64,000 nucleotides of DNA from Setoptus koraiensis (GCA_048013815.1 CM106586.1:23498001-23562000); one strand, 5' to 3'; positions 8,297 to 61,480 are shown, counted from the stretch's first letter. Made by a program: numbers and translations. Notes: generated by a model from the letters alone, not told the origin.

Positions 8297-8465
8297 CTGG
8301 CGGGCGATCGGAAAACAAACACAGCGAACAAATACAAACATGTAACGTGTTAATTACTAGCTATGCAAATTAGGAGCCGATTTATGCGCAATATGATAAG
8401 ATTTTATTGCGCATTGTTGCGCGTTGTCGCTCAATGACAGTTTGTTTCTGACGGGTTCTACTTAC

Positions 8466-25665: not shown

Positions 25666-26051
25666 GATTGCCAATCCGGCAAACTGATCACTGCAAGCCA
25701 ATAACTGGGGCCAACAGAATCGATTGTTCACCGATGTATTTCCAACTAAGTGAAAACCCCGAAAATTCGTATGCGGGTCATAAGTGAGTCATTTGATACA
25801 CACTTGTTCTCACCGGAATACCAAATCCAGGGGCTTTTTCTCGTTTCTACCGAAATTTATTTCTCTCGATACCAATAGGAATATGATGGAATTGAAAGAT
25901 TTTCCGCAATGGACAAGTGATTTTTAGAGACAGACAGTGTTGATAGATCTAAAAACACTTGCAATATGAATTATAGTATCGGACAGTTTAATTTTGGTGT
26001 CTGAGTGTACGGATTGGTTGCCAACTGTAGGTTTCGGTTGAACACTGTAAG
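25666..26051. mobile_element. Dispersed repeat family 2 copy (MITE or transposon relic)
   Basis: Reverse complement of 50881..51269 over about 390 bp. Shorter related units occur at about 25147..25200, 25268..25332 and 40920..40985. Confidence 0.62.
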
Positions 26052-26169
26052 CTTTATTAGGTCGACTGAACACTATATTTCATAGTCGCATGTGCAGATT
26101 TTTCACCTGTCTGCCGAAAAAAGTCAGATTTTCGCATGATTTCTACCGATTTAACAGCAAGAGTGACCA

Positions 26170-29029: not shown

Positions 29030-30121
29030 GGGATACTGCCGTTTCATAGGCGAACGGATTTCATTTTCGTGCGCTTCTTCGACGCACAATCCAACGAACG
29101 GACACTTCGTAAAACGAGTATTTCGTGGTCGTACATTTCATACACATACGATCCGATGCTAGAGGATCATCACTGTGAGAGAAGATGCGAATTTTTAGGT
29201 CTTATCATCAGTGTCGCCAATAATCACATCATAAAAGGTGTCTTGAAACAATGGCGACATAAAGCATCGCAATACACAATTTTCGAAGAATTCGGGGCTA
29301 ACTCTGGAAAAAAAATATCGTTTCAATCGTGCAAACTAAGACAACAATGACCAATCTACTTTTGTTGACCTAGCCACATTGCAGAATGTCTTATGCGAGA
29401 CAGATTGAGCGAGTTATCGAAGATATCACTCGATACCTGGACGAATCTGGTTCAGCTATGTACCAACTCTCACTTGAACGGCTGAATCAGCATAGACATT
29501 TACTCACATACTCGCATAGCCACACAGTAATAGTGTATGAAGTTCGAGAAACACACGAATTGAATCAAATTACTGTAATTAGATCACACACACATAAGTG
29601 TTTCTATTACCTACAACCAATTAAATTATTGGTTTGCTACCAACTAACATCCGCAGTAGTGTCCACTAAGACTAAGACTATGTGTGAATCAATATATTCG
29701 ATGCGATATGATATATCAGCATAATATGTGGCACATATTATATTGATACTAGGGAATAAACAAGAGAGAGAGAGAGGGAATATCTTGAAACTTGATTGGC
29801 GGATGCGAACATGGTCGCGCCATCTATGGGCGATCCCATCAAACCGATCCGCAAACAATTGTACAGCGCAGTCTAGGCAACGGACGGCAGCTAGTGGCAC
29901 TTTCAAACAATTCTCACCGAACACACTGGTAGCTGAGTGGTTTCTCCGCATTACGTAACAGAGCGCACATTTTCGATGTAACTTGCAATGAGCTATCACA
30001 TGATCTCATCGAACAATTGATACATGTGTTTTTTTTACTTAAATCCACTACTCTAATTACACTACATCTCTTATTCACATAACACAAGCTTATTTATTGG
30101 TGGCGATTGATCCTCTCAAGT
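29030..30121. mobile_element. Dispersed repeat family 1, longest copy (probable non-autonomous or decayed transposon; family unidentified)
   Basis: The left part matches 24492..24979 and the right part matches 13050..13641, both in direct orientation with high similarity. No TIR, LTR or TSD was recognised. Confidence 0.65.
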
Positions 30122-32947: not shown

Positions 32948-33700
<753 letters not shown>

Positions 33701-41122: not shown

Positions 41123-42674
41123 GGACTCTTTTGCGAACACTAGAAATGACGATAGGCACTTCTACCGTGTGGAAATTTGCCAATACCTTTGGCCGTAGTT
41201 CAAGAAAAAGACGTCAGAGGCGCTTGCGTCAGCTTGAAAATGCACTGAAAAGGTTGAAGTGTCTCGAAAAATGTTTCGTTTTTACTTCTTTTTTTTTCTT
41301 GTTGATTTGATTTTCGAATGCTCATTCGATCCGACGCACGAAAAATGCGTGTACAAAAAGCGACCTCAAACGGTTTTTCGCTGAACTGCGGCCGAAGGTA
41401 TCGGCAGATTTCCGCCCAGTAGTATGCGTGAAAAAATAACATCTATCGCTAGCACTTTTGACGACGACCAATCACACTAGACCAAAGAACTAGTGCCAAG
41501 ACCAGCCAACCTATTAGAGTTGGTCACAATTTCGGCGAAGATTTTTTTTTTCGTCTTTGTTATAGTGGTCGCGTTGAGACCCTATGATCTGAACGATTAT
41601 AATTTCCGATTTCGACGTCATAATTATAGCCTTTCGGATTGGATGCGATCGGGTTGCGCTTTGCGAAGTTGGCAAATTCTGAATTTAGCCGATTGTTACA
41701 ACATTGTCTAGTGTTTTGAAACAAGTGGATGAGGCGACCGTAGTTCGAGAGCGAAATTGGCCGAACGGCTTAGAGGCCGAACAGCCTTTTATAGGGTCAC
41801 TTGTTTATTTGGTTTCCAGCGGCGGCGGCGGCAGCAGCAGCCCCAAACAAAAGAGTGCGATGGACGAGGCTGGAGTGCAGTCGCAACACACCTCTCAGCG
41901 CACGCGAAGAATAGAGGCAAGAGCAGATATCAAAATTCTCTGATCCGCTCTCTGGACTGCCCGATTCGGTCGTTCTTTCGTTCTCTCGTTGTGGCGTTCT
42001 CTCGGCCGTTCTCTCGTTCGCCGGCTCGTTCTTTCGTTCGCTCGGCCGTTCTCCCGTTCGCCGGCTCGCTCGTTGGCCTTCGTCGGAACGTTCGCATGGC
42101 TCCGACGTTTGTCCCCTGTCGGCTTAGCGTGAGCCTATTGGCGCACGCCAGCCACTCTGTCATGCAGTCACGTATGGCCTGTGTTGTTGCATGGCACTGC
42201 GACTAACAAAGTTTGGGCCGAGCACTAGTGGTCTGCCCATGGTCTGGCACGGCATCGGCGTCAACAACGACAATTCGCAGCCAACTCACAACTGGCTTCG
42301 AATTGGAGCAAACAGCATTCTTGGGTCGGCGGCTTGCGTTGGCCGCTTGGATATTGCACAGTGCCGCTGTTTGATACACTGTTGGTGGCTCAGTGTGTTT
42401 GTGTGTGTCTATATAGAAGCGACGCGGTAAGAATAGAAATAAGAGCAGAGCCACAATAGTAATTATTTCTGTCGGCGTATATACGCTCACTTTCAGAATG
42501 GAAGAGGCCATTTGTCAAGTAAAGATTTTTGAATTTTCTATGCGCAGAGACACATTTGCGCACATCGGGCTGCTTGCGACGCGCATCCAAAGTGACACAT
42601 CTTCCTTTACAAATGGCTTTTTCATTCTGGGAGCGACCGTCTACGCCACCGCCACCACTTCTACTGCAAACACT

Positions 42675-42965
42675 GCTTCGAAAATGCGCTTCGAAAATGC
42701 GGCTGCGAAAATGCTGCTGCGAAAATGCGGCTTCGAAAATGCGGCTTCGAATGTGCGGCTGCCAATGTGCGGCTGCGAACACACTGGCGAAAAGAAGCGA
42801 GTTCATTTCGCTTGTGTGTGCTCCCTTTTCTGTTGGCCGTTTTTTCGCTGGTCGCTCGTCGGCAGCATCGTCGGATCATGTTGGCGATGAGCACAACGAG
42901 ATAAAGCCGGCCGAGAGCTTCTCAGCAGCCGAGGGCTTCTCAGCAGCGGAGAACTTCTCAGCGGC
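42675..42965. repeat. Two short tandem arrays (about 14-bp GCTKCGAAAATGCG; 18-bp CTTCTCAGCAGC... x3)
   Basis: Direct inspection: 42675..42780 and 42911..42965. Confidence 0.8.
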
Positions 42966-43499: not shown

Positions 43500-45080
43500 G
43501 TTTGCTGCTGCAACTTGTTTGCTGCTGCTGCTGCTGCACTGTATTTGTACTCTGGTCGGTGTGGCGCTGTTAACTCGCTGCGAGAAGGACACACCAGATA
43601 GCTGTGAGAGAGTTAGAAGAACAGTCGGATTCTTTTGCTTTTGGCTCGTTCGCAACTGCTTACATAACAACGCAGCAGCAGCGGCATCAGCAGCAACAAC
43701 AACAACAGCAACATCAGCAACCAACAACAACATCAACAGCAACGACGCAGCAACGACAATGACAACGCAGAACACATAAATTAAATTGAGTTTGCCAAAC
43801 TCACTGACAGCGCAACATACAAACTAGTCAGATAAATAAAATTGACAAAGCCGACAGCACACTGCAGAATTGGATGCCAAAAACTAACTGATGCTAGATG
43901 CTGCTCATGCAAGTCGCCATACAAACAGCACGGTGCTGGCGCGAAAAACTTTGCTGACCTATAAAAGTCACGAAAGAATTATTCCGATACAAAGTGACCC
44001 TATATGCGGCTATATGCGGCCAATCCGGCAGCGGCCTCAAGCGAGCCGGAATTTTCATTTCGCCTTGTCAAACAATATCTCTGCTCAATATCGTTATGAA
44101 ATATTGTCTGCTGACACAATGTCCCCTTTACAGGGGCAGCTTTTGCCCTTTTTTCCACTGTCCCACTGCAATCCAATTCCGATCGCCAGCCGATTTGCTG
44201 TTGCGCTGCTCGATAGGCTGTTAATGAGATGATAATTAATCGAAATGAATATTTAGTCGCAGTCGGTCGCTAAATAGATCAACTTGACACAAACAATGAT
44301 GCTGCTGCTGCTGCTGTGATGATTAACAATGAGCAATAAAATGTTGCACTGTTGCACCTCATACGCAACAAGGTTTGCCGGGCTAATCTCGTCGTTGATT
44401 GTTATTATTATTATTATTGTCTTTTTTATTATCTCCTTCTTCAAGATATAAGCCATAGACACATTAACAATAATGGCCGACACATAGTAACAAAATTATC
44501 TAGTTCCAAAAGCTAGCAGATACCATCATCACTGGTGTGCAGTTGACACGAGTCAAAATAAACAGAGTGAGCGATAAAAAAAGTCGTTATGATGATGTAT
44601 TGATGATTATCACTGGACATAAGTGACACCATAACAACAATAATGACGAAACATAAACAGGTAGTTATAACGGAACCACCAATTGAACTGAAAAAGGCTG
44701 AGGTGACAAGGCCGCAATATTGAACTTGACTTTGCCACTTTCGTTAGCTCTCAATAAATAATTTAATTGATTGTCTAATTGATAATAAACTAGTCAACTT
44801 GCATAACTGCATCTATTTACACACACACACACTCTAATTTTCATATAAAACCAATGCAAACCACTGTGCCAGCCAGAGCCTATCCTGTAGCCTCTGGCCA
44901 GAACAAACACTAAACACCTCATACTATTACTGTGGCCATAATGACGGCAATAATAATAGTAACGATTGTAATAATGAAAATAACGATCATCATTATTGCT
45001 TTTATAGTGACATTCATGTTGTTGTCATAAACACTCAACTCGCACTTATGAGATCATTGATCTTGATTCTTTTCAATTCG
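43500..45080 (-). repeat. Triplicated non-coding module, copy A (inverted; in Antp intron)
   Basis: Collinear reverse-complement matches to 53900..55340: 44920..45078 vs 53901..54059 (4 mismatches in 159), 43772..43900 vs about 55000..55137, AGTGACCCTATA at 43993, TGACCTATAA at 43955. Outer boundaries are approximate. Confidence 0.88.
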
Positions 45081-46608
45081 AACAAGCCAAGGTGGCCCTC
45101 TCGATAATGGCCCGTATATCACAAATCGACTGCCACTGTCACTACTGCTCACCGCTACCGGTGGCTACATTCTTGCAGACTCTATTTTAGGCAAATGACG
45201 TGGGCTCAAGTTCATCTTTTTCGCATCTTTTTCGGTTCTATTTCGGGTGTTTTTCGCATGTTTTTTGGATCTTTTCGCGCAACCAACGAGTGAATCGTCA
45301 CTCTGGCAGTCAGAGTCTGACTGGCATCATCCGCGAGAATTGCAGAAGCTCAAAAAAGCGCCACTCCAACCCTTCTAGACCCTACAACTTTTCGCCCAAC
45401 TCTTGTGAGCCTTTCATTCGAGCTCTCATCTCGATTGCACGCTTGATTTCCGTCCCAATAAAAGCTGAATGCAAGCATGAAAATATTTTCTTTCTGGCAG
45501 TTTGAAAATGATGCCAACATGGTGCCTTTTTCTACTCTATTGACTTTGAGCTGGCCATGGGCTGATGGGCTGCGTGCAAACAGGTAGTTTGTGTGAGGGT
45601 GCAGACTAGCCAGACGAATGATTAATCTGTCTGGCATGAGACTCATCTCATCTCAGCTCGGCTGTGTGAGTAACAAACAAACAAAGTTAAAGAGAGATCT
45701 TTGGCTCGTTTCGTGCACGCTCTTTCTCAGCCAAACTTTGGTTGTTGCAACATCTAGTCATATTGTTTTCTCTCTGAATATCTCTCTGAATATCTGAACT
45801 TTTTGTTAGAAATCGCAACAGCTGATCCGGCAAGACAAGACAAAACAACAGCATACATTGACACTTGAACTATAAACTCAGGAAATTGTCTGATGAAGTG
45901 GAGCCAATTTTCAATTGGCTCGTAATTGTTGCTTTGTCAACTTAGTCAATGGGAGCCAACAACATGCGACGACAACAACAGTAGACAGGCAGTCGGTTGA
46001 TTGATTATGCTCTCTCTCTCTCTCTGTGAGCCGACCAAGTTTGTTTGTTTGTTGGTTGTTGTTGTCGCTGTTGTTGCTGCTCTGATGACGAACCAACGCA
46101 TAGATTGCACGCAGCCAGACTGGCTCGCAAGCTAGAGCAACTTTCAATAAATAGCAACTACAACTGCATACGACAAGTCGCTGCACAACGACTGGATGTG
46201 CGGATAGGGATAAAAATAAAAATGTTTGTAAAAAATTTGCTCGCCGTCGTCGTCATGGTAGACAACTCTTTCCATTATAGGACAGATTGATACTCGTCTA
46301 CTCGTTGGTGGCGCTGTTGCGAAAACACAGCCAGTCAGCTGATGGCGCTGGCTTTCACCACTGGCAGCAGTCTGGCAACTAGGCAACTGGAAAGAACCGA
46401 CCGAAAGAATCGCTCGCCGCGCGACAGAAATGGAGCCATCTACACGCTTGGTTGCCTATAGCAACAACATGCCCGACGTTCTTACGCAACACAATGCTTG
46501 GCCTGATTGCAATGCTCTGGCGTGTTGACTGTGTGTGCTAGTTGCGTCTCTACGCAGGACGCGAGCGACACAACAAACTGAGAATGTTCCTCAAATTCGC
46601 AAAATCCG

Positions 46609-46720
46609 ACAAGTTCGGCAAATCCTACAAATTGGGCGGATTCTCAAGTTCGATAAGTTCGGCGAATTCTCGAGTTCGACAGATTCGGCGGATTCTCAAA
46701 TTCGACCGGTTCGACGGATT
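46609..46720. repeat. Degenerate 26-bp tandem repeat at the 5' end of the Antp intron
   Basis: Units GGCGRATTCTCRARTTCGA... start at 46635, 46661, 46687 and 46713. Confidence 0.8.
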
Positions 46721-46761
46721 GTGCAAGTGCGAGAACAGAAACAAGAGTGAGGAAAACTCAC

Positions 46762-48664
46762 CGAATTGGTTGCGCATCCACGGATAGCAGACTGGCGACA
46801 AATCGGACGCAACCGTCTGGCCGCTGCCAGTCGCAACAGCCGATCCTGCGGCGTTGATGGTCAAAATGTGCTGCTGTTGTTGCTGTTGTTGCTGTTGCGC
46901 CGGTTGCTGTTGGGCCGGCGCCGGTTGCATCTGCTGGTACTGGCCGTCGGCTGGTTGCTGTTGGTGTAGGTGACTCGGTTGTTGCTGTTGGTGGTGGTGA
47001 TGCGGCTGCTGCTGCTGTTGTTGTTGTTGTTGTTGCTGTTGGAGGTGATGCGAGTGCTGGCCATGATGATGTGGCTGATGCGCATGATGCAATTGATGAT
47101 GAGAGTAAATAGTTTGCTGCTGCTGCTGCTGATGATGATGCAGCTGAGCAGATTGAGCTTGCAATTCCGGCCTCGCCACTGACTGAGTGTGCAGTTGTTG
47201 CTGCTGTTGTTGTTGAGATTGTTGCTGCAACTGCATCTGCTGCAATTGTTGCTGCATCTGATGCTGCTGCTGTTGTTGTTGTTGTTGTTGATCGGCCTCT
47301 AGTGACACCGACGACGACGAGGGCGAATGTTGCGTAAGAGGATGCTGCTGCGGCTGCTGGTGACCTTGTAGGGGTGCCAGAGTTGGCGGCGTCGATATAG
47401 GTAGGATCCTCAAATTGGTGCCGGCGGCATGCAGATTGTCCGCTGCTGTGGCGCCAAAATTGCTGCTGACGCTGCTGTTATTAGACTTGTTGCCATTTGT
47501 GACAGGCTGCAAAGTTTGGGGCGACTGGTGATTTGGTGGCGTTCCGTTTGCTGGCGACGCGGCTATTGCGCCCATTGACGTGGGCACAACCGGCACGCCG
47601 GCAGCAGCAGTAGCAGCTATCGGCAACAATATAGGACTATCGGCACAGGTAGCCGGTTGTGCAATACCGTTCATGATGGGATGCTGATGATGATGCTGAA
47701 AGTGTTGCTCATAATGTTGGTGTTGCTGATGGTGATGTTGTTGCTGTTGTTGCAGGTGGTGGTGGTGGTGGTGAAGTTGTTGTTGTGGTTGATGCTGCTG
47801 ATTATGCAAATGCTGTTGTTGTTGTTGTTGTTGTTGTGAATGCTGTTGGTGGTGGTGCTGCTGAAAAGCGGCCGCATTCTGATGATGGTGATGGTGTTGT
47901 GCATGTTGCGCGTGGTGCTGGTGGTGAAGGTGATGATGGTGGTGAGCGTGTGGCATCAAAATCATGGCATGATGCTGCTGCTGTTGCTGTTGTTCAATAT
48001 TGGTTAGATCGGCTGAATTAAGCAAATGATGATGATGATTGTTGTCCGCTAGCGGTGATTGATTGCTGGCCAGCACTTGTTGTTGTTGCTGCTGCCGCTG
48101 CTGCTGAGTGAATTGCTCCTGATGTAAATCAAGCTGTTGGTGTTGGAGGTGATGAAGCTGCTGCTGCTGTTGTTGTTGGTGGTGATGGTGGTTGTGATGC
48201 TGCTGGTGCTGATGGTGTTGTTGATGGTGGTGCAATTGATGGGGTGCCTGGTGATGCTGCTGTTGTTGCAATTGTTGTTGCTGTTGTTGTTGTTGCTGAT
48301 GCTGAAAGTGTTGCTGATAAGTTTGCTGCTGCTGTTGTTGATGACTCTGAATTGTGTCCGGCGTGATGTTTGCCGTGAGTGTTGGCGTCGATTGAGGACT
48401 CACCGCGCTCGCCAGCATGGTGGCATCGCCCGCGCCCAAACTGACCGGCGACTGATGGTGATAATTGTGAGGTAGGCTCCCATTTGTGACTGGACTAGCC
48501 GAGTGATTGAAATGATGATGATGATTATTGTTGTAGTTGACCCTAGATTGAGTGGCCACAGTGGCCGCTGCGCTCGCTGCTGCCGCCGTCATTGCCGATT
48601 GTTCATTATGCGACACAACAGGATTGTATGGCAGATAATCGGTGGCGGCCTCAGTTATGTTCAT
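46762..48664 (-). CDS. Antp: Antennapedia, coding exon 1 (very Q/H-rich, ends in YPWM hexapeptide)
   Basis: The first in-frame ATG is at 48664 ([13 protein letters not shown]...). The exon ends ...VCYPWMRNQF-g with a GTGAGT donor at 46761. The intron is 13,131 nt and the spliced CDS is 2586 nt (861 aa). Confidence 0.88.
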
Positions 48665-48826
48665 CTTCTCGTCATTTTCGTCGTCCGAGATTTCGATCAA
48701 TTTAAATTACAATCGTCGATTACAATTATTGCGTGTTGTGTGTGTTTTGATTATTTCACTGCAATGTTTCAATTAGCTTCAATTTCGTCTCGTTCTTCAC
48801 GATTTTCATCCTCTTACCTAGCGTTG
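48073..48826 (-). repeat. Shared 5' block, Antp copy (leader plus first ~197 codons)
   Basis: Direct repeat of 57945..58696 at an offset of about 9.87 kb. Bases 48324..48556 are identical to 58196..58428. Confidence 0.95.
48759..48817 (-). other. Putative 59-nt 5'-leader intron of Antp
   Basis: AG|GTAAG donor at 48817, CAG acceptor at 48759 and a CTAAT branch-like motif. Donor and acceptor are conserved in the Ubx-like copy. Confidence 0.35.
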
Positions 48827-48997
48827 CGAGTGTGTGTGTGTGTGTTGTTGTTGTTGTGTGAAATTAATTATAAAATTAATTATAAGTTTTAGTTGATTTT
48901 AGCAAAGTTGCCCAAAGTGGCCCGATAAAAGACCTCTGTCTCTCTTTCTGTGCGACACAGAAAGAGCTTGAATTTGAGCTTCACACCCACAAATGAG

Positions 48998-49045
48998 CGT
49001 GTGTGTGTGTGTGTGTGCGTGTGTATGTGTGTGTGTGTGTGTGTC
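48998..49045. repeat. Interrupted (GT)n microsatellite upstream of Antp exon 1
   Basis: Direct inspection. Confidence 0.9.
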
Positions 49046-50580
49046 TGCGCTTGCGCAAACAAGCCACATGATGAGCTCGAATCGGTTCGGGCGCTTCGAA
49101 CTGGCACAATTGACAGAATTCGACGGCGACAACAATCATTGTTGGGCCAACGAGTCGTTGTCCCATTGCCGCATTGGCGAATTATCGCAATCGATCACCG
49201 TTTAATTGGGCCGGGCGAGCGAATCGGTTGAAATTTCTGCTTCTTTGCCGCTTTTGCAGCAAAAAAGTTCATAGAGGCATGCCCTTCATCGTGTTGTCGC
49301 GAATTTGTGTGCGGCTCCGGTGGAGAATTCGCGTTCGCTCACCCTCGTGCACGGGGCACGACCTTTTACGACTTAGCGAGAAACGGTTCGCCGGACAATC
49401 TAGCGGCGCTGGTTGTGTTAAAAAGTTGTCGCTGCGCGCTAAAAAGTGCTGGCGCTCCGTTTGTTTGGACAGTTATATTGGGCCAACATCAAACAGTTAG
49501 ATTGGCCAAACTGGTTGCACTGTCCAGTTGGCCGGACTGGTTAAACCGATTGAACCGATTCGCCGGCTTTTTTACACCGTCCGTCTATTGATTGTAAATG
49601 TGCCATGATTTTATGACCGCAATAAAGGGTGTCTAAAGCAGACCGCACATCTATAAAACACACTGTGCTGCTCGCTAGCACATATTCTTTCCGAAACGAT
49701 GATCAAATGAAATTCAGCACAACTAATCAGATGGACTGTGTTGAGGTCAAGAAAAGTTCCATTCGCTTGGCACAATTATTAATTTCGCGCTGCACATAGT
49801 CTTTCTCTCTGCACGCTATTTGTTCCAACTTGACCCGGCATCGCACTCACTGGTCACCAACACCAACTTGGTGTCACCAAGAGACATCTATGACCCGCCA
49901 ATGACACTAATGGCCGATATACTCTTGGCCGTTTACTATATAACCAATTGGGATCCTATTAGATGGAGAATAATTCACGAACAATTGTAAACAAGATACC
50001 GATTGAGAAGCAACAAGATGTTTAAGGCACCGGACAATACGCTCGATTTTCATAACAAGCAAATCGGTGAGTTTCATATAATCGTGAGATTAATTTATCC
50101 GGATCCCGTATTGGGGGTGGCTCTATTATATTCACCCACAATGTTAGAGATAAACCACACGGAACAATAGAGACTATCAATATTTATCTTATCAACACCA
50201 CATACTCACACCATGCCTACCCTCCTATTTGTCTCAAACAACAACATAATCATTGCCAGGTCCATCATCTAAATTTTCTTTTTCTGCCAAATTTTGTCCC
50301 TCGCAAAACTATCCATTTAAATTCAAAAATATAGCTGACATAGCGATGGGTCAGAGATGCAAAAACAAATCAAGATCGTCGGCCTACATCCTGACGTCCC
50401 CACTGGGGCATGTCTATACTAACGCCTGTCCCGATGGTTTGCATTGTGTTAGGTACGACTCAACACTCTGACCACTTAACTCAATGCACATCAAAATATG
50501 AATTAAAATGCTCATAACTGATTGCTCCTGGTCAAACATATAAACTTTCCACTACATATACATTCGAATATCATCAAACT

Positions 50581-50961
50581 ATGACTAACAATAACCCAAC
50601 ACAAACTCTGCTCTTCCTTCCCTCGTTTCTCTCCATCTTCTATGACATTGTAATTAATATTATTAGACTCTACGGCGATGCGGACTACGACAAGATTGAC
50701 TGGGATACAAAGGTTGACTTTATCAGAGCGTCAAGTCTAATGGAGAGCAATCCGCATGCAAAGCGTCTTAAAAAATGGTTACAAGCATATTTTGACAACG
50801 CGCCTCGTTGCGAAGAGATTGAACTAGATCTTTGTTGTTTAGATCTTTATGGAGACTTTAACTCAAATATTTGGAAAAATCTTATAGTGTTCAACCGAAG
50901 CCTGCAGTTGACAACCAATCCGCACACTCAGACACCAAAGTTAAACTGGCCGATATTATAA
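50581..50961 (+). pseudogene. Coding-like ORF fragment of unknown identity (126 aa) running into repeat family 2
   Basis: ATG start and balanced, non-repetitive composition (YGDADYDKIDWDTKVDFIRASSLMESNPHAKRLKKWLQAYF...), unlike the surrounding slippage ORFs. No family was recognised. Confidence 0.3.
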
Positions 50962-51269
50962 TTCATATTGCAAGTGTTTTTAGATCTACCAACACTATTT
51001 GTCTCTAAAAATCATTGTCCATGGCGGAAAATCTTTCAATTCCATTATATTGCTATTGGTATCGAGGGAAATAAATTTCGGTAGGAACGAGAAAAAGCTC
51101 CTGGATTTGGTATTTCGGTGGGAACAAGTGTGTCTCAAATGACTCACCTATGACTTGCTCGCATACGGATTTTCAGAGTTTTCACCTAGTTAGAAATACA
51201 TCGGCGAATAATCGATTCTGTTGGCCCTAGTTACTGGCTTGCTGTGATCAGTTTGCCGGATTGGCAATC
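50881..51269. mobile_element. Dispersed repeat family 2 copy, inverted relative to the 25.7-kb copy
   Basis: Reverse complement of 25666..26051. Confidence 0.62.
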
Positions 51270-51834
51270 CAGCCTAGCGGAGGACAGCGAAGAGTCGGAC
51301 AAATGAAACATCGTGCATCGAAGAAATTTATTCTCATGTTTTGTTGTATAGACTCTGGATAAGCGACACCATTGTAGAACAATGACTCTCACTAACCATC
51401 TACCTCATGTGTTTGTTACTGTATTATTGTTCGAGTATCTCGACAATCTGATAGCCGCATATCACTGCCAATAAACAAAAAGTATATTCCAGACAACGAC
51501 GAAACAGTCACTTCGATTATTCATTTCACTTCTTTATTTAGTGCTGTATCAATGGTGTAGATGTGATATTGGTTAGTTGTGTTTAGTTTAACCCTTGCCT
51601 CACCAAAATAATTTGACATTGAGAAATTGAGTGACTTTTTCTCGCTTCAAGAGTGGCCCTCCTAAGCGTTACGCATGTCAGAGTTGTCCTGTGACATAGA
51701 AGCCTCAATTGAACGATGTTTCTTTGCACGAATGGAATATCAACGACCGATCAATAACGGTTAGTTGGGTGCTCGCTTGCAGCGCCGTCTAACGTTGAGA
51801 AAACTCAACTTTTTTCGGAACAATCGCACGCTAC

Positions 51835-51852
51835 CACCTCTAGATGGCACCA
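51835..51852 (+). promoter_or_regulatory. CTCF-like motif (CCTCTAGATGGCACC)
   Basis: By-eye consensus match between the Antp 5' end and the Ubx-like 3' end. Confidence 0.35.
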
Positions 51853-53899
51853 TCATCAGCAATCACAATAATCTTTTATAATATGAATATTATTACATTG
51901 AGAGCTATCGAGTTATTCGATTGGCAAAATTAAAATCGACACGGCAAGTGCAAATAAGCTTGCACTTGTCATAGCTTGATTTGCAAACAATATGGCACAC
52001 ACACACACGTAACACACGAACAACTGGTAACAAACAAACAAATAAGCAAGCAAACAAGTGTAATCCATGCCAGCAAGACTGTGGCTTAAAACAGACAATT
52101 GTGAGAGTAAAAAGTGCAATTGCGCAACAGCAAATCACAATGATGATAAAATGAAATTTTGAGTATGAATAACCTATAATTATTGTTATTACTATAGTGT
52201 GTGTGTGCCATTTGCAAGTGGCAGAGCGACCGATGGCATTATGATTATGGTTAGCATTGGCGTGGCCACGTCTAGCCAATCGAAGGCCCGTCGTAAAGAA
52301 TGCCAGCCAACGACGAGCGCCAGATGAGATTGAGTTAGCGAGATACGAACAACGATTCACAACAACCGACAAACAACTCGGCTCACAAACTCGGCTGGCT
52401 CTATGCGAACGCACAATCAATCAACAGAATGGCGATTTGTGGTGCCAGATTACCTGTCGGTTCGTTGTTGTTGTTGTTGTTGTTGTCGCTGCCGTTTTGT
52501 TGTTGTTGCTGCTCACCTGTTGGGCTGTTCAGTTATTGGCAATTGTTCTGGCTGCGATGAGTCACCCAAGCAAGCAAAACGAAGCGAACAAGCAAAGAGA
52601 GAAATATCTTTCCTCGCAAGTGGTATAATGTTCGATGGGATAGCTGGCCAGTTGCCTTGAGCGCCACACTTCGATTCGAGCGAGCTCGACAACGCAGCCG
52701 AGCGACGACGAGCCAACAATTTGACTGAATTGATAATAAAATTATTAACAATTATTGTTGTTGCCTGCAAACTAACTCGTCGTCGTCATACAAGTCGATA
52801 GTTCAAGTTCACACACTCATATAGTGTGTTTACGTTTAAAAAGAAAATTTGAAATAGTTGAAAAAGTTGTGAGTAGCTCAGAGAAAAGTTTAATAAATGA
52901 TATATAGAGATACGACGAGTAACATGAATAATATACGAAGTACATTATTTAAGGATAAGCCGCTTGTTGCCGCTTGTTAAATACACGAACAGCTATCTAA
53001 ACTAAACTATCTAGCCCGCCAGCTCGAGCCGAGAATCTTTGCGAGAGAGAAGGCGAATATTAGTCGTTTGTAACAGCTAGGTGAGGTAGCCCGGGCAGAG
53101 TTACAAGTTGAAATTAATTATGTATGTCTGGCTAGTTTTTGTACGCATACAAACTACTTGTTCGCACGCAGCTTACAATTTCATGAGGAGCGAACAATCA
53201 AAAGAGTAAGAGTGGCACTAATATCTGTGATAGCCAGCCACTAACAACATGATCTGCCAAGTGGCTCCTGACAGCTCAATAAATGTTAGCTGCAAACTAT
53301 TTCAAACGCGAAAAAAGAAAATCTCTCCAATTGGATTGAATTAGAATTAGGATGGCCAACAAAGAATTGAGCCGGGTTGATCTGATCTGAGTGTCAAAGA
53401 ACTCTTCACAGGGCTCGAAATATTTTGGATGATGCAAGTGGCGAGTGAAAATGGACTGTGTGCGAAAAAACGACGACTCAAATGTATTTCACAGACCACA
53501 GAGATGAATAGATGTCATGTCGGACGAAACTGAATAGAGTTGGTCGCAAATCAAGTTTGGATAGGCAGATTTTTTGAATAGATATAGATATAGATATCTA
53601 CTATATAATTCCTCGGAGCACAAGATGCTGCTCCGTTGTGCAGGTTGATTGCGCGACAATTACCGATTGACGAACCAACGTTTCGATCCACATTAATCCA
53701 ATCTATAATGTACAGAACTATCCATAGTTGCGAGGGCTGATTTGTTATTGTTCCGATGCGAATATGAGCTTGTTGGCGATTCCGTTATAACGGAATGGCC
53801 ACTTGATTACGATTGTATCAACTGGTGGCATCAACAGTGACAATGACAGATTACGGATGCGAAGAAAGTGAGTGAACCTTGTGTCACCTTGTCTCATTT

Positions 53900-55340
53900 C
53901 AATTGAAAATAATCAAGATCAATGATCTCATAAGTGCGAGTTGAGTGTTTATGACATCAACATGAATGTCACTATAAAAGCAATAATGATGATCGTTATT
54001 TTCATTATTACAATCGTTACTATTATTATTGCCATCATTATGGCCACAGTAATAGGATGTGCATGGCGTTAATTTGGCCAGCGGCTATATGCGCCAGTGC
54101 TCTGCTCTCTGTTATTATTCTCTATTATTGGTGAGTATGGAAATGAGTGGGCAGACGACAGCTAGACAGCTTTGTTGACTTTCATTTCGACACGGCGACA
54201 GACAATCAATTAACTAATCAGCGATTAATTTATTGTTACTACTTGTTAATACTTGTTAGCTCAATACTGTGGCGCAACCGAGTCAATTCAATTGATTCAA
54301 CTACCTGCTCACGCTCATCATTATCATTGTTTTTGTTGTCTCACCTCTGTCGGCAGTACATCATCGTAATGCCTTTTTTATCACCCACTCTCTTCGTTTC
54401 AAACGAATAACTATTAACTGCAAAACTGCATTGATGAGACTCTCACTCGAACTGGATAATTTTGTTACAAAGTGTCGGCCATTATTGTTAATGTCAATCG
54501 ATTGTGTTCTGCACCAGATAATAAATGATAATAACAAACAACGTGACTGAGTTATCATGATGTCGTTGTTATGGCGCCATCATTGCAACATTTGTCGCTC
54601 GAACGTATATCGTATGGGTCGATCCAATATTTTGTCCAATAAACATTGGACCGAATGTCCGACTCGATCGGATTTTATTTCGTTATTTAAACAGCCAATC
54701 ATCGATGAGGCAAATCTCAGAACATAGCCGTCTGACTGCAGTCAGCCAATCAAATGGCGAGACGCGAGACGAGGTGACGCTTTCGAACGCGCAGTGAGCG
54801 AACAAAGTTGGCATGCATTCAGTCTCGCTCCCGTTCCATCGAGGCCTGTGGCATACGTTGACCAGACCTCATATAGGGTCACTTTGTTGTGTCGGACGAC
54901 TCGTGACTGTTATAGGTCACTAATGTTGTTCAATTGTTATTATACTCCCTGTGTATGTGCGTGTGACTTGCATCAGCATCTCGCGTTTACCATCGGCTAG
55001 CATCAGCTAGTTTTTGGCATCCAATTTGAGTTAGTCTGTTGGTCTGTCTGAGTTGAGTTGAGTTGAAATTTATTTATCTCACTAGTTTGTATGCTGCGCT
55101 GTCAGTGAGTTTGCTAAACTCAATTTAATTTATGTGCCCAGAGTAGCCGCTGTTGTTGTCGTTGTTGCTGCTGTTGCTGCTGTCGTTGCTGTTGTTGTTG
55201 CTGCTGTTGTTGGCGTCGTCGTTGTTATGTAAGCAGCGAACGAAGCAAGAGAGCAAATAATCGCACTTCTTCGCTCGGATCTTCGCTCGGCTCTCACACA
55301 GTCAGCGCCAGCCATACATTGGGCAAACAAGTTGCCTTGT
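53900..55340 (+). repeat. Triplicated non-coding module, copy B (between Antp and Ubx-like gene)
   Basis: Inverted match to copy A and direct match to copy C. Blocks: AT-rich core 53901..54059, TATAGGGTCACT at 54872, TTATAGGTCA at 54910, TGTCAGTGAGT at 55100, TAATTTATGTGC ending about 55137, then a GTT/GCT tract. Confidence 0.88.
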
Positions 55341-55506
55341 AATTCTTTTTCGCTCGCATTGGTCCGCTTCGAAGCATCACGATCGAACACACACGCCACT
55401 CGAGCCACCTTCTTGTGGTATTCGCGAAGCTCTTTTGGAGCCAGCACCAATTCCAACCGATCGCTCCATCATCACCGAATCGATCCATCCACGATGACAG
55501 CGGCGT

Positions 55507-55521
55507 CCTGTAGGGGGCGCT
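55507..55521 (+). promoter_or_regulatory. CTCF-like motif (CCTGTAGGGGGCGCT)
   Basis: By-eye consensus match just beyond module copy B. Confidence 0.35.
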
Positions 55522-57006
55522 CACTGACGACCAAATCGACCGCCAGGTGCGTGAAAGTGAGTGTGCACATTGACAACTGGGCGCAATGAGACCTCACCTC
55601 AGCACAAAATCAAATGATGTCCTCCGGCTGTAAAGACCAATAAAAAACAATTTACGATCACACTCACACACAATGAGCGATCAGTCAGTGTGTAAAACGG
55701 CCTTCGAGTGTCATTGGCGGTTTTACAAACAGCTGACTGGACTGACCGACTGACTGACCGTTATATCGGTATATATCAAATCGATTATAACTGATAACTG
55801 GCGGACAACAGCTCACCTATGGATAATGAGACATATGTGAAGTGCTGGGCAGCGAGCGCTGATTCGCAAAGATATGAGCCAACATTTCTCGAGTGACATT
55901 CTCGTGTAGAGCCCGTTTGAAAATGCACTGATGGCAAGCCAGCCATCGGTCTGCTCTTTTCCGGTTTCTCTAACAAAGTTACAATGTAGCTTGTTTCAGG
56001 GATATTTGCCACTGGCATTGGATGCTAGATATTAGATTGCCAGATCTATATCAAATGATCGATATTGTGGCCCGATTCCGCTTGCCCGCCCACCGTCGAC
56101 ATGGTCAATATAGGCGCAACCATCGGCGCGCACGTTCGACTGGCCGTTGCAATTGATGCATCAAAACTAAATTGATATATTGATATGTGCAATGTGTGTG
56201 CTCATCCGTGATGGTCTTTTGTGATTGGCGACTTTGAGAGGCACAAGATGCAAGTTGATCAATCGAAGTGAGCGCAAGTCGAAAGCGCCCAGCGAATCGG
56301 CGCCTATAACGACTAACTCCGCCAAGTTGAATGAACTCGATCCAATCGAAAGATTGCCCAGTCCAATGCCCGACGACTCGACTCGATCGAGCAGTAGGGC
56401 ATCCAAGAAGCGCATCAGTCTATCCGAAGAAAAAAACGTTCTTTTTTTCTCGCAATGAATGCTCAAGAAAAAAAATTCTCAAAAGAGGATTCCTCAAAAA
56501 AGACTTCCCGAAAGAAGAAAAATGATAACTGAAAACTGGATGAGTGAGTGATTTTATGAATCCATCTGTGACGCATAACTGAATTGTTTACAACTGAATT
56601 CACGAAATACGTTTTTCTTCACCGCAAATCGCGGCAGTTTTGCCAGAGAAAGCAGAAAATAATTCCATTCACGATGCCTCGAATGCCGCGGCTAACGAGG
56701 CGTTCATTTGTTTATTTGTTGTTGTGACGACTCAATGACTCATTCATATGGACGATAAGTTGAACAGTTGTATACATTGTAGACATGTGATCGAACATGA
56801 AAATCACTCGAACAAGTTTTTCACGAGAACGTGTCAACGAAAAACTGTTTAGTCGAAAAAAAATTTTCTGAAAAATTGCTCACACGCAGAAAGACAGGTA
56901 AAAACAGAAAGAGAATTCTGAAATATTGATGCAGAGATAGTGCCGAATAAAATGACAGAATCACGAGCCCAAATGTGGAATAGGATGCCGTGCAGTTGAC
57001 TCACCA

Positions 57007-58536
57007 TTATCGCTGCTTGTGGTTGCTGTGATGATGCTGAGACGATCTAACCAAGGTGCCGTGTTGTTGCTGTTGCGAAGACGCCGACGACGACGATGTT
57101 GTCCTGTTGGCATTTGCCGACGACGACGTTGTTGTGGTTGGCGCTGTTGTGGTCGTTGACGACGATGATTGATTTGTTGTTCTCTCTTGTTCGTTTAGAT
57201 CTTTCACAGTTTGATCTTCTTTCTTTTTTTTCATGCGCCGATTCTGGAACCAAATCTTAATTTGGCGTTCGCTCAATGTGAGCGTATGCGCCAATTCAAT
57301 CCTTCTTCTTCTTGTCAAATATGCGTTCATTCTGAACTCTTTCTCTAACTCGAGCGTCTGAAAACGGGTATACGTTTGCCTGCCGCGCCTCCTAACGGTG
57401 GCACCAGTCAAATAGGGAGGTAATGTTCCATTGATCATCCACGGATAAGCCGATTGATAGCAAGCTGCGTGATGCAATGCAGCGGCTTGTTGCGCAACAC
57501 TAGAATGATGCTGTTGGGCCTCTTGATATTGTCTGGCGACGGCCACGTTGACAGCGTTGGCGACATTAATGGAGCTGGGCGAATTGACGGCAACGGCGGC
57601 CGCCGCGGCCGCACTGACCGCCGCCGCCGACTGTTGCTGTTGGTGGTGCGACTGATGATTATAGGCGCCAACATTGTGCTGATGATGCGACTGCTGCATG
57701 GAGGTTGTATGGTGTTGCTGATTGCTTCTCTGGTGGTGCGGCTGGTGGTGGTGGTTTTGTTGCTGCTGGTGCTGTTGTTGATGTTGGTGGTGTTGCTGTG
57801 ACAATGCCACTGATTGACCGGCCACCGTTGAGCCGACCTCTGACGATAGATTGTTGTTGTGGCTGTGGTTGTTGTTGTTGTTGTTGTGGAGATGTTGCTG
57901 CTGCTGCAGTGTCGTGGGTGACAAATTCGCAGACGATTTGATATGCACTTGTTGTTGCTGCTGCTGAGTGAATTGCTCTTGATGTAAATCAAGCTGTTGG
58001 TGTTGGAGGTGATGAAGCTGCTGATGCTGCTGTTGCTGTTGTTGGTGGTGCTGGTGGTTGTGATGCTGCTGGTGCTGGTGCTGATGGTGTTGTTGGTGGT
58101 GGTGCAATTGATGGGGTGCTTGGTGATGCTGCTGTTGTTGCAATTGTTGTTGCTGTTGTTGTTGTTGCTGATGTTGAAAGTGTTGCTGATAAGTGTGCTG
58201 CTGCTGTTGTTGATGACTCTGAATTGTGTCCGGCGTGATGTTTGCCGTGAGTGTTGGCGTCGATTGAGGACTCACCGCGCTCGCCAGCATGGTGGCATCG
58301 CCCGCGCCCAAACTGACCGGCGACTGATGGTGATAATTGTGAGGTAGGCTCCCATTTGTGACTGGACTAGCCGAGTGATTGAAATGATGATGATGATTAT
58401 TGTTGTAGTTGACCCTAGATTGAGTGGCTACGGTAGCCGCTGCGCTTGCTGCTGCCACAGTCATTGCCGATTGTTCATTATGCGACACAACAGGATTGTA
58501 TGGTAGATAATCGGTGGCGGCCTCAGTTATGTTCAT
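57007..58536 (-). CDS. Ubx: Divergent Ultrabithorax-like (UbdA-class) Hox gene; intronless CDS whose N-terminal ~195 aa are shared with Antp
   Basis: ATG at 58536. The protein has YPWM, a 14-aa linker, [59 protein letters not shown] and a UbdA-like peptide [12 protein letters not shown] (Ubx IQAIKELNEQEK; abd-A LRAVKEINEQAR). It lies immediately 5' of Antp and lacks the abd-A TDWM/PFER linker motifs. F at homeodomain position 11 is abd-A-like, so the Ubx label is less certain than the UbdA class. Confidence 0.72.
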
Positions 58537-58696
58537 CTTCTCGTCATCTTCGTCGTCTGAGTTTTCAATCAATTTTAATTACAATCGACGATTACAATTA
58601 TTGTGTGTTCTGTGTGTTTTGATTATTTCACTGCGATTTCGAATGGCTTTAATTTCGTCTCGGTCTTTACGATTTTCATCCTCTTACCTTGCGTTG
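57945..58696 (-). repeat. Shared 5' block, Ubx-like copy (leader plus first ~195 codons)
   Basis: Direct repeat of 48073..48826. There is one amino-acid difference (A/V) in the first 108 residues. Other differences are synonymous changes and poly-Q/H length changes. Confidence 0.95.
58631..58687 (-). other. Putative 57-nt 5'-leader intron of the Ubx-like gene
   Basis: AG|GTAAG donor at 58687 and CAG acceptor at 58631, paralogous to the Antp leader. The branch-like motif is not conserved. Confidence 0.3.
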
Positions 58697-59804
58697 TGTG
58701 TGCGTTTGCATAAAAGTAAACATAAGATATTAACAATCCGACGATTTCTGGCAAGCTGTTAGCTAACATAACAACAGTGGATGTGAATTTGAGCTCTCAC
58801 TTTGACTGTAACATTTTCAAACTGACTTGTTTGCGTGACTCATCACTTGGACTTGACTTTACTTCGTTGCGAGTTGAGTCAAGTCGGGCAACAAAACTTG
58901 CCATCCATTGCGTCTGCACATGCGCAAAAGGCCGTGCCCGCTGTGGCTCTGGTTGCTGGTTTACACAGTGACATCATTCCTGGCACTCTGGTGGTCAGAT
59001 CCCGCAGATAAACCAGCACAACCGATACTAGAATCGAGCACCCATTTCAGAGATGTTTTTCGACATATTTTCCGAAAAAAAAACGATAATAATTTCGATA
59101 TTTATTTTCCGAAATAATGGAGCTTATTTTTTCAGTGTCCTCTCTCGTTCTCTAGTTATTGAGTGGTTTTTCGAGATTTTCTTTACTTTCTTTCCATTTC
59201 GAACAGAATTTCGTCAGGACGTAAATAATGAAATCATTCTGCTCGAATGTCGCCAGTCGGTGGAATGCTCACTCCGCTGTCTTGAGATGCACTCAATCAG
59301 CCAATAATGATCCGCGAAGTGGACGAAATATTATAGAAAATTGAGAGAATCTTGTATATTTCGCTGTTTCCATGACGAAATTTTCTAAATCCTGACTCCA
59401 CAGAATGGTGGTGTGAACGCGTACACGACCACACATGCTACCTGCAAATTGCGATGATGAATAAATTGCGAGAAATCGAACGGCAATATAATTTGAATTA
59501 TCATGTTGTCTGGTGGCTACTGGTGGCTAATCGAGGCCAATTGATGACCGAGTTAGTGCAAATTTTACATTGAGCAGCATCTGAAACGCTACACTGTAAA
59601 TGAGCAGCTTCAGTATATATCTATTAGTTGATAATGGTGCTGGGATCGACATTAAATCATTTTATTAGTATCACACGGTGCGTTATTTTTTCAATTTTAA
59701 CGCAATGCAGTAGCTGCATCGTCCACTGCTACAGGTGAGATGTGGAGGTTGCATATGCAGGTTATGGCAAGGATGACAGGTAAGAAGACTGCTGAAAATC
59801 AGTA

Positions 59805-61480
59805 GCATCAAGATCAATGATCTCATAAGAAGTTGATTGCATGACAACATCAATGTCACCATAAAAGTAATAATGATCATCGTTGTTTCCATTATTACAA
59901 TCGTTATCATTATTATTGCCACTCTCATAGTGAGACTCTCGCAAGGAGTGTGCGAGTTTGTTTTGCCCACAGGCTACACAGCTATTTTGTACTGTAACAG
60001 TTGGTTGGCATTGCAAATTGCTCGAAAATGAAAAGGCAAACATTATACAAACATTAGGTTACGTAACTCTCTCTCTGCCTACCTTTATGTCTCTGTGTTT
60101 GTGTGTCTAATTTATCAATTTATCAATTAGACACACAAACACAGAGACAATCTGAATTAACTGATCGAGAGTCATATCTGAGTCGTTTATATTTAAATGA
60201 ACTACCTGTTTTTCAGAGCTACTCACACTGTTTATTGCCATTACGATTATTATTGATGGCACATGCTTAGTGGTTATGACTGTTTGCACTTTTATTCCTT
60301 TCATTTGAGCCTGGCTTCATTATTATTACCTCTATTTAATTATCAATTGATGATACACTTAGCTTGTTAGCAGAACTTATAAGCGCGCACCGATAGTAAC
60401 AATAACCTATTTTTATTATTACCTGAATGGCCCGATATTTACAATGTTCATTCGCAGACAGTTTATGTTCATCTTAAACGAGACCATAAAAAAGATAATA
60501 GTACAATAATGAGCACCATTGCAGTAACCTCTGCGTCCAAATTGTTGACTGTTAGTTAATCTGTAAGGTGTCATGGAGATGACACAAACTAACCACTGCC
60601 AATTGAAATCAATTGACTAAACTCTTATTGAGTGTTTGTTGCAAAATAACAATATACATATATATATATAAAAATAACCAACTAAAGCGACCGAAACGAG
60701 ACTGGACCAAGATATCGGCTCATTCGATCCATTGAACTTGATGCCGCAACCGGAAATGGCAAACTCTACATATCTCTGCATGATGGCTATCACCATATCA
60801 ACATCATATCTAGCGAAACCACTTTAATGGCCAGTTAACAATTGAACGATTTATATTCTATATTTTTCTAGTTTTCTAGTTCTAGTTAATGCTTTTTCTT
60901 CTCATAATTATTATTCTTTGTTCTGTTTCGAGACGCTGTCCATGTAAAACTGACACTCCGAAGATTAGAATATTACATTTCGGCCCGAACTAAACAGATT
61001 TGGAGCAGGCTGTGGCCGATTGTGTTGATCGTATGAGCCGAAGGCAACAATTCATACATTTGATAGATGGCGAAAGACAATGAACAAATATAGGGTCACT
61101 TGCGTGTGAGCCATTCCAGCAACTGTTATAGGTCAGCTAGTTTGATGTTGCTGTTGCTGCTGCTGTTGTTGCTGTTGCTGTTGCTGTCGTTGTTGCTGTT
61201 GCCAGTGGTGCGATTACCACCACTAGCAGCCAGTTTTCGGCAGTCATTTTGAGCGAGACATTGAGTGGATCGGCGCTTCGATTTTCTTTCCATTTTGCTG
61301 GCTTGTTTGCTGGTGTCAGTGAGTCCGAGCCGAGCCTAATTTATGTGCTGGTGTTGGCGTTGGCGTTGCCCTGGCCGTTGTTGTTGTTGTTGCCGGTGTC
61401 GTTGCTGTTTCTGCCGCTGCCGCTGCCGTTGCTGTTGTTGGCGTGATTGTTGCGAGCAACGAATCGGAAAATAATGGAAA
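59805..61480 (+). repeat. Triplicated non-coding module, copy C (upstream of Ubx-like gene; most diverged)
   Basis: The same blocks occur in the same order: core-like 59808..59930, TATAGGGTCACT at 61089, TTATAGGTCA at 61126, TGTCAGTGAGT at 61314, TAATTTATGTGC at 61337. Boundaries are approximate. Confidence 0.78.

Follow-up and report, generated by a model that had tools for sequence, protein, structure and literature searches.

The Antp-Ubx interval of the four-legged mite Setoptus koraiensis contains a non-coding repeat family with four local copies (A, B, C and D), and the question arises whether the short blocks conserved among them mark regulatory DNA. Hox clusters serve in textbooks as the example of conservation in both gene order and regulation. 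The window, i.e., the whole stretch of DNA analysed, comprises 64,000 nucleotides (GCA_048013815.1, CM106586.1:23498001-23562000); the genome searched amounts to 48.7 Mb and is assembled in two contigs. Antp consists of two exons, which were read one by one, and its intron of ~13 kb holds copy A. The Antp ATG is located at 48664 and the Ubx-like-1 ATG at 58536. In the initial annotation, three collinear copies of a ~1.5-kb module were described, and their block-wise conservation was taken as the sign of a duplicated cis-regulatory module. It was further stated that A and B are placed at similar distances past start codons, which is correct, as A is found 3.6-5.2 kb downstream of the Antp ATG and B 3.2-4.7 kb downstream of the Ubx-like-1 ATG. 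An alternative geometry is as valid: B, C and D are each located 5' of one gene and in the same orientation, B at 5.2 kb from Antp, C at 1.3 kb from Ubx-like-1 and D at 1.5 kb from Ubx-like-2.

The two full-length copies are composed as follows:

43510-45094, minus strand: copy A, full-length module as delimited by alignment, inverted relative to B, within the Antp intron at 1.7-3.3 kb downstream of the splice donor of exon 1
44888-45094, minus strand: block 1 of A, 90% identity with B over 207 bp, one mismatch in the central 123 bp
44461-44506, minus strand: block 2 of A, 46 bp, 93% identity with B
43510-44005, minus strand: R part of A, containing block 3 and a CAA/CAG-type simple repeat (43694-43743)
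43751-43843, minus strand: block 3 of A, 93 bp, 85% identity with B 55066-55158
53885-55335, plus strand: copy B, full-length module, upstream of the Antp ATG (5.2-6.7 kb) and downstream of the Ubx-like-1 stop codon (1.7-3.1 kb)
53885-54087, plus strand: block 1 of B, its right half being a degenerate 21-bp tandem repeat (53992-54041)
54449-54494, plus strand: block 2 of B, pairing with A 44461-44506

The inverted gapped alignment of both copies joins 53885-55272 in B to 45094-43616 in A and covers 1558 columns at 63% identity (E=5e-111). Homology includes the spacers between the blocks (z=15.8 and 24.8 against dinucleotide shuffles), and the block-to-block distances are similar in A and B (588/564 bp and 564/503 bp). 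The homology ends at 53885/45094 and has faded by ~55335/43510. Low in copy number, linked and homologous beyond the blocks, A and B have the properties of a local segmental duplication, which are absent from the middle of C (z~0). A and B are homologous over the whole ~1.5 kb, but C, unlike in the initial description, is alike at its two ends only:

59804-60013, plus strand: block 1 of C, 85-88% identity with A and B over ~120 bp, a further 92 bp matching A alone
60014-61087, plus strand: middle of C, ~1.1 kb, unrelated to A and B, with a 62-bp palindrome at 60088-60149
61088-61452, plus strand: R part of C, about 55-60% identity with A and B

Block 1 of C matches B with 84.6% identity at 59807-59921 (E=6e-29) and A with 74% at 59804-60013. 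Its R part aligns with B 54871-55224 at 60.6% identity (E=7e-17), a relationship that is also detected with the trinucleotide repeat left out (z=13.6 with B and 6.7 with A). Besides the R-initial 12-mer, it has in common with A and B a further, similar motif, an 11-mer and a simple repeat of the GTT/GCT type. The middle of C gave no homology to A or B (z=-0.3 and 0.4), and no relative of it was detectable elsewhere in the 124 kb examined. C counts as a partial copy rather than a complete third one.

A fourth, partial copy was found ~4 kb past the end of the window, at the window-equivalent positions 67965-68900:

54867-55802, plus strand: segment X, consisting of the R part of B and 470 bp past the A/B homology, 99.5% identity to D
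G000:C2:23565965-23566900: copy D, 1.5-2.5 kb 5' of the Ubx-like-2 ATG

X and D align without gaps over 936 bp and show 5 differences (K=0.005). The left edge of X is the same point at which the R homology of C begins. D was rejected as a full module as its flanks are without homology.

The divergence among the copies was compared with that of two further tracts:

48097-48838, minus strand: shared tract S2, Antp side (5' flank and N-terminal coding sequence), used as neutral clock
57957-58708, minus strand: shared tract S2, Ubx-like-1 side, the partner of the neutral clock
49919-51746, plus strand: segment S3, a sharp-edged recent copy of the MGMT-like gene region 22.6 kb rightward, K=0.010 (S3a) and 0.053 (S3b)

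Between A and B, K2P is 0.008 in the central part of block 1, 0.05 in the 166-bp core, 0.07 in block 2 and 0.17 in block 3, while the spacers at 0.81-0.94 are nearly saturated. The divergence is thus far from uniform, with K2P ranging from 0.008 to 0.9 among the parts. For block 1, K is 0.135±0.038 between B and C and 0.132 between A and C. S2 shows dS=0.151, dN=0.009 and K=0.127±0.029 in the non-coding 5' flank, and in the two Ubx-like genes dS of the 3' halves is 0.19. The block ages coincide with those of other local tracts in three classes. The first contains X (K=0.005) and S3a (K=0.010) together with the A-B central block 1, the second contains S3b (K=0.053) together with the A-B core and block 2, and the third contains S2 and the Ubx-like 3' halves together with block 1 of B-C and A-C. 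Since block 1 would accordingly have changed at the synonymous and UTR pace since the S2 event, the block-wise similarity is not evidence of constraint, and the initial annotation is not supported on this point. The near-identity of A and B (K=0.008-0.05) does not rescue it, being of the same age class as other sharp-edged local patches, one of which carries a broken MGMT-like gene. In S3, a dispersed repeat replaces the middle of the MGMT-like gene, and the open reading frame is cut to 126 aa compared with 259 aa. As S3 is a truncated gene copy, the patch-copying process is not specific to regulatory DNA, and there is no reason to count the broken gene copy as a regulatory module. If the blocks are as old as S2, their divergence is neutral; constraint is implied only if they are as old as the spacers. 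It had also been proposed that the copies derive from the same rearrangement as the exon shared by Antp and the Ubx-like gene. A link in timing is plausible (K=0.135 compared with 0.151 and 0.127), but a single tandem duplication for B-C and the shared exon was rejected, as the offsets differ (9.87 kb vs 5.89 kb) and the interval from the exon tract to block 1 is unalignable.

The genome-wide search bears on whether the segments could be relics of a transposable element. Two repeats located close by served as controls:

49622-49818: dispersed repeat, 195 bp, found at least 20 times in the genome and used as positive control for the search
50877-51269: dispersed repeat, ~390 bp, more than 10 genome copies, including an inverted one at 25666-26055, second positive control

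In the BLAST search of B, C and the right flank of B against the whole genome, A, B, C and D were the only matches, so that the copy number is four, all local, with no dispersed copies. A whole-genome profile search with block 1 returned the three copies at 113-135 bits, and the next match (30.6 bits) was AT-rich simple sequence. Of eight genome occurrences of the R-initial 12-mer, four are the four copies, among which it is invariant. Terminal inverted repeats (TIRs) and target duplications (TSDs) were not found at the copy edges (best local end-to-end alignment scores 7-12). Open reading frames of 90-130 aa are present by chance and none is common to the copies, in agreement with the initial description of the module as free of open reading frames and terminal repeats and as not a transposon. 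A low-copy element or a MITE relic could be suspected because genuine dispersed repeats lie nearby and because block 1 of A and B can adopt an imperfect hairpin of 113 nt; its size (about 120-200 bp), AT-richness and weak hairpin resemble those of MITEs. Unlike MITEs, block 1 is present in three copies, all within 15 kb. The same kind of search that yielded local copies alone gave 10-20 or more matches for the neighbouring repeats, and no relic of a transposase or reverse transcriptase accompanies the copies, which rules out a MITE, a DNA transposon or a retroelement. The transposon reading is already effectively refuted and its residual probability is negligible.

Block 1 was also considered as a coding exon or micropeptide and rejected, as the B-C differences are spread over the codon positions as 6/6/4 without bias and indels of 3 bp and 5 bp shift the frame; its several open frames are owed to ATT/ATC-rich periodic sequence. 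A miRNA or structured RNA was rejected likewise: the A/B hairpin, with z between -0.6 and -1.95, has no counterpart in C, and no Rfam match was obtained, either at gathering scores in the window or at E<=1 on 53700-55900. Overall, folding yielded z-scores of -0.6 to -3.0, and C is predicted to fold differently from A and B. With the Ubx-like N-terminus as query, relatives were not detected, and the invariant 23-mer had 0 matches in JGI metagenomes.

With a probability of roughly 0.55, the segments constitute a strictly local family of paralogous non-coding DNA, in which the blocks are patches that were re-copied between paralogs at different times. An old local duplication would have given rise to A and B, of which A would have been inverted into the Antp intron, and the A/B spacers would then have diverged almost to saturation. 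C may be an older or more eroded copy, and D would be a very recent 936-bp copy of the right part of B. Mechanistically, we infer either non-allelic (ectopic) gene conversion in short tracts or patch copying by template switching, the tracts measuring 0.05-1.9 kb. This process could likewise have generated the near-identical 5' flank and N-terminal coding tract in Antp and Ubx-like-1 and could have pasted the broken MGMT-like gene copy upstream of Antp. The block pattern would then be a record of patch ages rather than of selective constraint; the segments may still hold regulatory DNA, which the block pattern does not require.

Interlocus (non-allelic) gene conversion between local segmental duplicates is known from globin gene pairs and from the palindrome arms of sex chromosomes. 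In analogy, few linked copies in direct or inverted orientation are found here, with short sharp-edged tracts of high identity within much older, diverged homology; in a single A/B alignment the blocks have K of 0.008-0.07 and the spacers 0.81-0.94. Both coding and non-coding tracts are affected, and the tract divergence equals the local neutral rate. However, the partners flank anciently separated Hox paralogs (Antp and Ubx/abd-A-type) and not recent duplicates. Furthermore, the edges of the X and S3 tracts are sharp and free of TIRs and TSDs, and their flanks are unrelated (flanking z between -1.5 and 3.1), for which reason conversion inside older homologous flanks was rejected for both. In contrast to classical conversion, these patches lie in non-homologous flanks and are hence insertional copies.

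Several observations speak against patch copying. Block 1 is the best conserved part in A-B as well as in B-C and A-C, and all four copies retain the R start. Such recurrent conservation of the same pieces is predicted by selection and equally by self-reinforcing conversion, in which only stretches that are still similar keep converting. If the B-C split were as old as the unalignable middle of C, K=0.135 would represent constraint. In addition, the block spacing of A and B is well kept, and a streamlined genome might be expected to delete old neutral duplicates. In a rival reading, a cis-regulatory or promoter-proximal module would have been duplicated and kept by purifying selection, with block 1 and the R start as transcription-factor platforms that could provide shared inputs for Antp, Ubx-like-1 and Ubx-like-2. 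This reading is possible but tentative, with odds clearly short of even. It would explain why the same blocks are conserved across independent pairwise comparisons, why B, C and D are all found 1.3-5.2 kb 5' of one of three paralogous open reading frames in the same orientation, and why a 12-mer that is not a common genome word is invariant in 4/4 copies. Among the invariant short motifs are cores of the TGTCA type and half sites resembling AGGTCA, which serve as leads only, and at the distal end of X a TATA-like box precedes a TCAGTC initiator-like run by ~30 nt on the gene strand; this cluster is missing from A and C. As duplicated or shadow enhancers in Hox complexes, the segments are non-coding, placed in a Hox intron and in intergenic DNA, and located near each of three neighbouring genes. 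Unlike shadow enhancers, they show a similarity that is not above the neutral expectation if the blocks are as old as S2, block 1 of B-C being as diverged as the synonymous and UTR sites of the adjacent shared tract. The 99% identity of A and B over 123 bp, next to spacers that are saturated, goes beyond what enhancer constraint typically produces and has the same age as the patches that copied a broken gene, and by estimate the runs of invariant bases in block 1 are no longer than expected at 88% identity. A Polycomb/Pho reading was rejected, as the Pho-like GCCAT pair in block 1 of B is not conserved in A or C.

The TATA-like box is located upstream of four TCAGTC motifs (minus strand, 55775-55740), with GTGAG-type donor-like sites downstream of them, both likewise present in D, and a GTGAGT within block 3 is conserved on the plus strand of A, B and C. 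It is conceivable, though improbable, that R and X were the promoter and a non-coding leader exon of Antp, copied before Ubx-like-2, or that the blocks were exons of a local lncRNA. The TCAGTC run doubles as a tetranucleotide microsatellite, the candidate signals occur on both strands, a convincing acceptor upstream of the ATGs was not found, and neither an Rfam match nor a stable fold is common to the copies. Very high identity, clean edges and non-homologous flanks would also be expected if the 99-100% patches (X/D, S3a and the central A-B block) were assembly artefacts, e.g., mis-joined haplotypes. This is very improbable given the few real differences within the patches (5 in 936 bp; K=0.010), their position within unique flanks of a two-contig assembly and the series of similar but older patches into which they grade; an artefact cannot account for the older homology of A, B and C.

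If local patch copying is the explanation, the Antp-Ubx interval of a compact mite genome is a patchwork that extends over intronic and intergenic DNA, a coding exon and an unrelated gene. An outgroup is required before the resemblance of paralogous non-coding blocks is interpreted as regulatory constraint; here, the similarity of the blocks does not exceed that of synonymous sites of equal age. A more far-reaching and doubtful proposal is that Antp and the two Ubx-like genes repeatedly exchanged their 5' ends, including block 1, R and X as regulatory or promoter DNA along with the 5' UTR and the N-terminal coding tract. Ancient and distinct Hox genes would then have acquired common upstream inputs and protein N-termini, i.e., concerted evolution of regulation across Hox paralogy groups, which might bear on the reduced eriophyoid body plan. 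If the blocks prove to be active elements, they would constitute a natural experiment with regulatory DNA common to different Hox genes.

The non-coding module that recurs around Antp and the Ubx-like genes is a genuine repeat family, strictly local, non-coding and distinct from transposons, with two full members (copies A and B) and two partial ones (copies C and D). Its setting was described in a genome of 48.7 Mb in two contigs, the window being G000:C2:23498001-23562000, in which the minus strand carries every Hox gene. The two Antp exons were read one by one, by reference.

Hox genes in and next to the window
8109-8279, minus strand: ftz-type homeobox
about 33455-33625, minus strand: Antp homeobox exon, encoding an Antp-type homeodomain
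46625-48700, minus strand: Antp exon 1 ORF, first ATG at 48664
57007-58572, minus strand: Ubx-like-1, intronless Ubx/abd-A-type gene, ATG at 58536 (Pfam Homeodomain, E=8.5e-20, followed by a UbdA-like tail)
64896-66443 (window-equivalent), just beyond the window: Ubx-like-2, second intronless paralog

The initial annotation had described three collinear copies, which holds for A and B throughout their length, whereas C matches at its two ends only. In a self-BLAST of the window, three collinear inverted matches link 43.6-45.1 kb to 53.9-55.3 kb and one 120-bp match at 59.8 kb hits both A and B. Under permissive scoring a single alignment unites A and B (53885-55272 to 45094-43616, 63% identity, 1558 columns, E=5e-111), and the stretches separating the conspicuously similar blocks are also homologous (z=15.8 and 24.8 against dinucleotide shuffles), with the block spacing preserved. 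The left edge of this homology is sharp at 53885/45094 and the right edge dwindles by about 55335/43510. C aligns with A and B in its initial 120-210 bp (59804-60013) and with their right part at 61088-61452 (z=13.6 and 6.7, the trinucleotide repeat left out), while no match was found for the 1.1 kb between the two ends; within this middle lies a 62-bp near-perfect palindrome (60088-60149, 93.5% self-complementary). The right part of the module behaves as a separate unit, its opening 12-mer being invariant across all copies, and the position where it starts is the left edge of X, a 936-bp segment (54867-55802) that recurs 13.1 kb rightward with 99.5% identity as copy D, upstream of Ubx-like-2. 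B, C and D share one orientation, each placed 5' of one of the three paralogous ORFs; A is the exception, being inverted and intronic.

The A and B cores (44888-45094 and 53885-54087) lie 8.8 kb apart in inverted orientation, on either side of Antp exon 1 and the region upstream of it, and recombination between them would invert Antp exon 1. The distance from the Antp exon-1 donor (46761) to the near edge of A (45094) is 1667 bp and that from the Ubx-like-1 stop codon (57007) to the near edge of B (55335) is 1672 bp. This likeness is probably a coincidence, as the two edges concerned correspond to opposite module ends and the DNA between is not homologous.

The divergence along the A-B alignment covers two orders of magnitude: K2P is 0.008 in the central 123 bp of block 1, 0.050 in the 166-bp core, 0.068 in block 2, 0.17 in block 3, 0.31 in the right part ahead of the repeat and 0.81-0.94 in the spacers. 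Such a mosaic inside one alignment excludes uniform neutral decay and leaves a choice between constraint and re-copying. Local clocks are provided by S2, a tract that Antp and Ubx-like-1 have in common (48097-48838 and 57957-58708; dN=0.009, dS=0.151), by its non-coding 5' flank (K=0.127+-0.029) and by the 3' halves of Ubx-like-1 and Ubx-like-2 (dS=0.19). Within error, block 1 equals the S2 values in the B-C (K=0.135+-0.038) and A-C (0.132) comparisons. A link to the shared-exon event, as proposed earlier, is plausible on timing for block 1 of B and C. A younger class (K=0.05-0.07) comprises the A-B core, block 2 and S3b, and the youngest class the central A-B block 1, X (0.005) and S3a (0.010).

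S3a and S3b belong to S3 (49919-51746), a sharp-edged copy, upstream of Antp, of a region coding for an MGMT-like protein and situated 22.6 kb rightward (K=0.010 and 0.053). In S3 the middle 445 bp of the MGMT-like gene are replaced by a dispersed repeat of roughly 390 bp, and its ORF ends at 126 aa, whereas the intact gene (L031 9213-9992, in the DNA adjoining the window on the right) runs to 259 aa. As S3 is a broken gene, the process that makes sharp, young patches of 0.2-1.9 kb also moves DNA without a plausible regulatory role. Homology was sought at the flanks of X and S3 and none was found. Further local duplicated segments (0.5-0.9 kb, 86-95% identity) occur between ftz and Antp, within the Antp intron and past Ubx-like-2.

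Other duplicated segments and dispersed elements
L031:8547-10000 plus L033:1-442, adjoining DNA to the right: counterpart of S3, with the intact MGMT-like gene
13043-13641 and 29513-30121: local duplicated pair
24492-24979 and 29030-29501: local duplicated pair
L033:3669-4538 and L033:9147-9995: local duplicated pair
49622-49818: 195-bp dispersed element, at least 20 genome copies, 80-91% identity
50877-51269: dispersed element of about 390 bp, more than 10 genome copies, 68-90% identity, one being an inverted match at 25666-26055

Repeated local copying or conversion offers the best explanation of the block-wise similarity, and we assign it a probability of roughly 0.55. On this simplest reading, the blocks would be dated patches, produced by non-allelic gene conversion or by patch copying, that overlie old duplicates. 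A selected cis-regulatory or promoter-proximal module, which might co-regulate Antp and the Ubx-like genes, is a live, if tentative, alternative. It would account for block 1 and the start of the right part being the best-kept pieces in independent comparisons, for the kept A/B spacing and for the placement of B, C and D relative to the paralogous ORFs; however, kept blocks, spacing and positions would equally be expected if further conversion were limited to stretches that have stayed similar. Furthermore, the distal end of X (55740-55794) shows, on the strand of the genes (minus), four TCAGTC initiator-like motifs in tandem (55775-55740) that are preceded at about 30 nt by a TATA-like box. 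An identical copy is present in D (L031:4838-4892). The TCAGTC run doubles as a tetranucleotide microsatellite, and the whole may be a promoter or simply such a repeat. As read from sequence, a promoter-proximal or enhancer role would fit these points, and the putative motifs (TGTCA cores, AGGTCA-like half sites and a non-conserved GCCAT pair) are leads and no evidence. A transcribed leader, counted separately from the cis-regulatory reading, appears improbable.

The earlier view that the module is not a transposon was borne out. Whole-genome BLAST with B, C and the right flank of B returned the local copies only, besides many GTT/GCT simple-repeat matches, and a block 1 sequence profile scored A, B and C at 113-135 bits and its next best hit, in AT-rich periodic sequence, at 30.6 bits. 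As a positive control, the same search found the 195-bp and 390-bp dispersed repeats of this interval in 10-20 or more copies. Terminal repeats and target-site duplications were sought at the segments and found in none, and the transposon reading was rejected on both grounds. A coding block 1 is unsupported, with B-C differences distributed 6/6/4 over the codon positions and two frame-breaking indels; its right half is a degenerate 21-bp tandem repeat, and the open frames across block 1 are due to its ATT/ATC periodicity. A structured RNA is likewise unsupported, as Rfam searches of the window (gathering scores) and of 53700-55900 (E<=1) gave no match and the predicted folds are weak and differ from copy to copy.

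Published work on eriophyoid genomes reports that they are streamlined and have lost proboscipedia (PMC7738191; bioRxiv 10.64898/2026.08.24.746826), and the searched passages of these two sources do not discuss the Antp-Ubx interval. For the Ubx-like homeodomain region, the named arthropod matches are Ubx proteins, including that of the eriophyoid Fragariocoptes setiger (66% identity); relatives of the Ubx-like N-terminus were sought and none was detectable. An exact-word scan of JGI metagenomes for an invariant 23-mer of the module gave no match. One N-terminal peptide opens Antp (48097-48664), Ubx-like-1 (57957-58536) and Ubx-like-2 (L031:1860-2443). Between Antp and Ubx-like-1 this coding tract shows dN/dS=0.06 at dS=0.15, and in either against Ubx-like-2 the synonymous sites are saturated (dS about 2, dN about 0.31). 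Antp exon 1 closes with a YPWM motif, after which comes a canonical GTGAGT donor (near 46761), and the ORF continues into the intron. About 30 bp past this donor starts a 26-bp tandem repeat (4 copies, 46627-46732), and a 14-bp tandem repeat (at least 7 copies, 42674-42799) lies in the Antp intron. A paralogous copy of the N-terminal exon of the ftz-type gene (8459-9616), 75% identical to it, sits about 13 kb leftward, at 3.4-4.6 kb ahead of the window start (L036). Another homeobox occurs 17.6 kb ahead of the window, and the ftz-type gene therefore appears to be duplicated.
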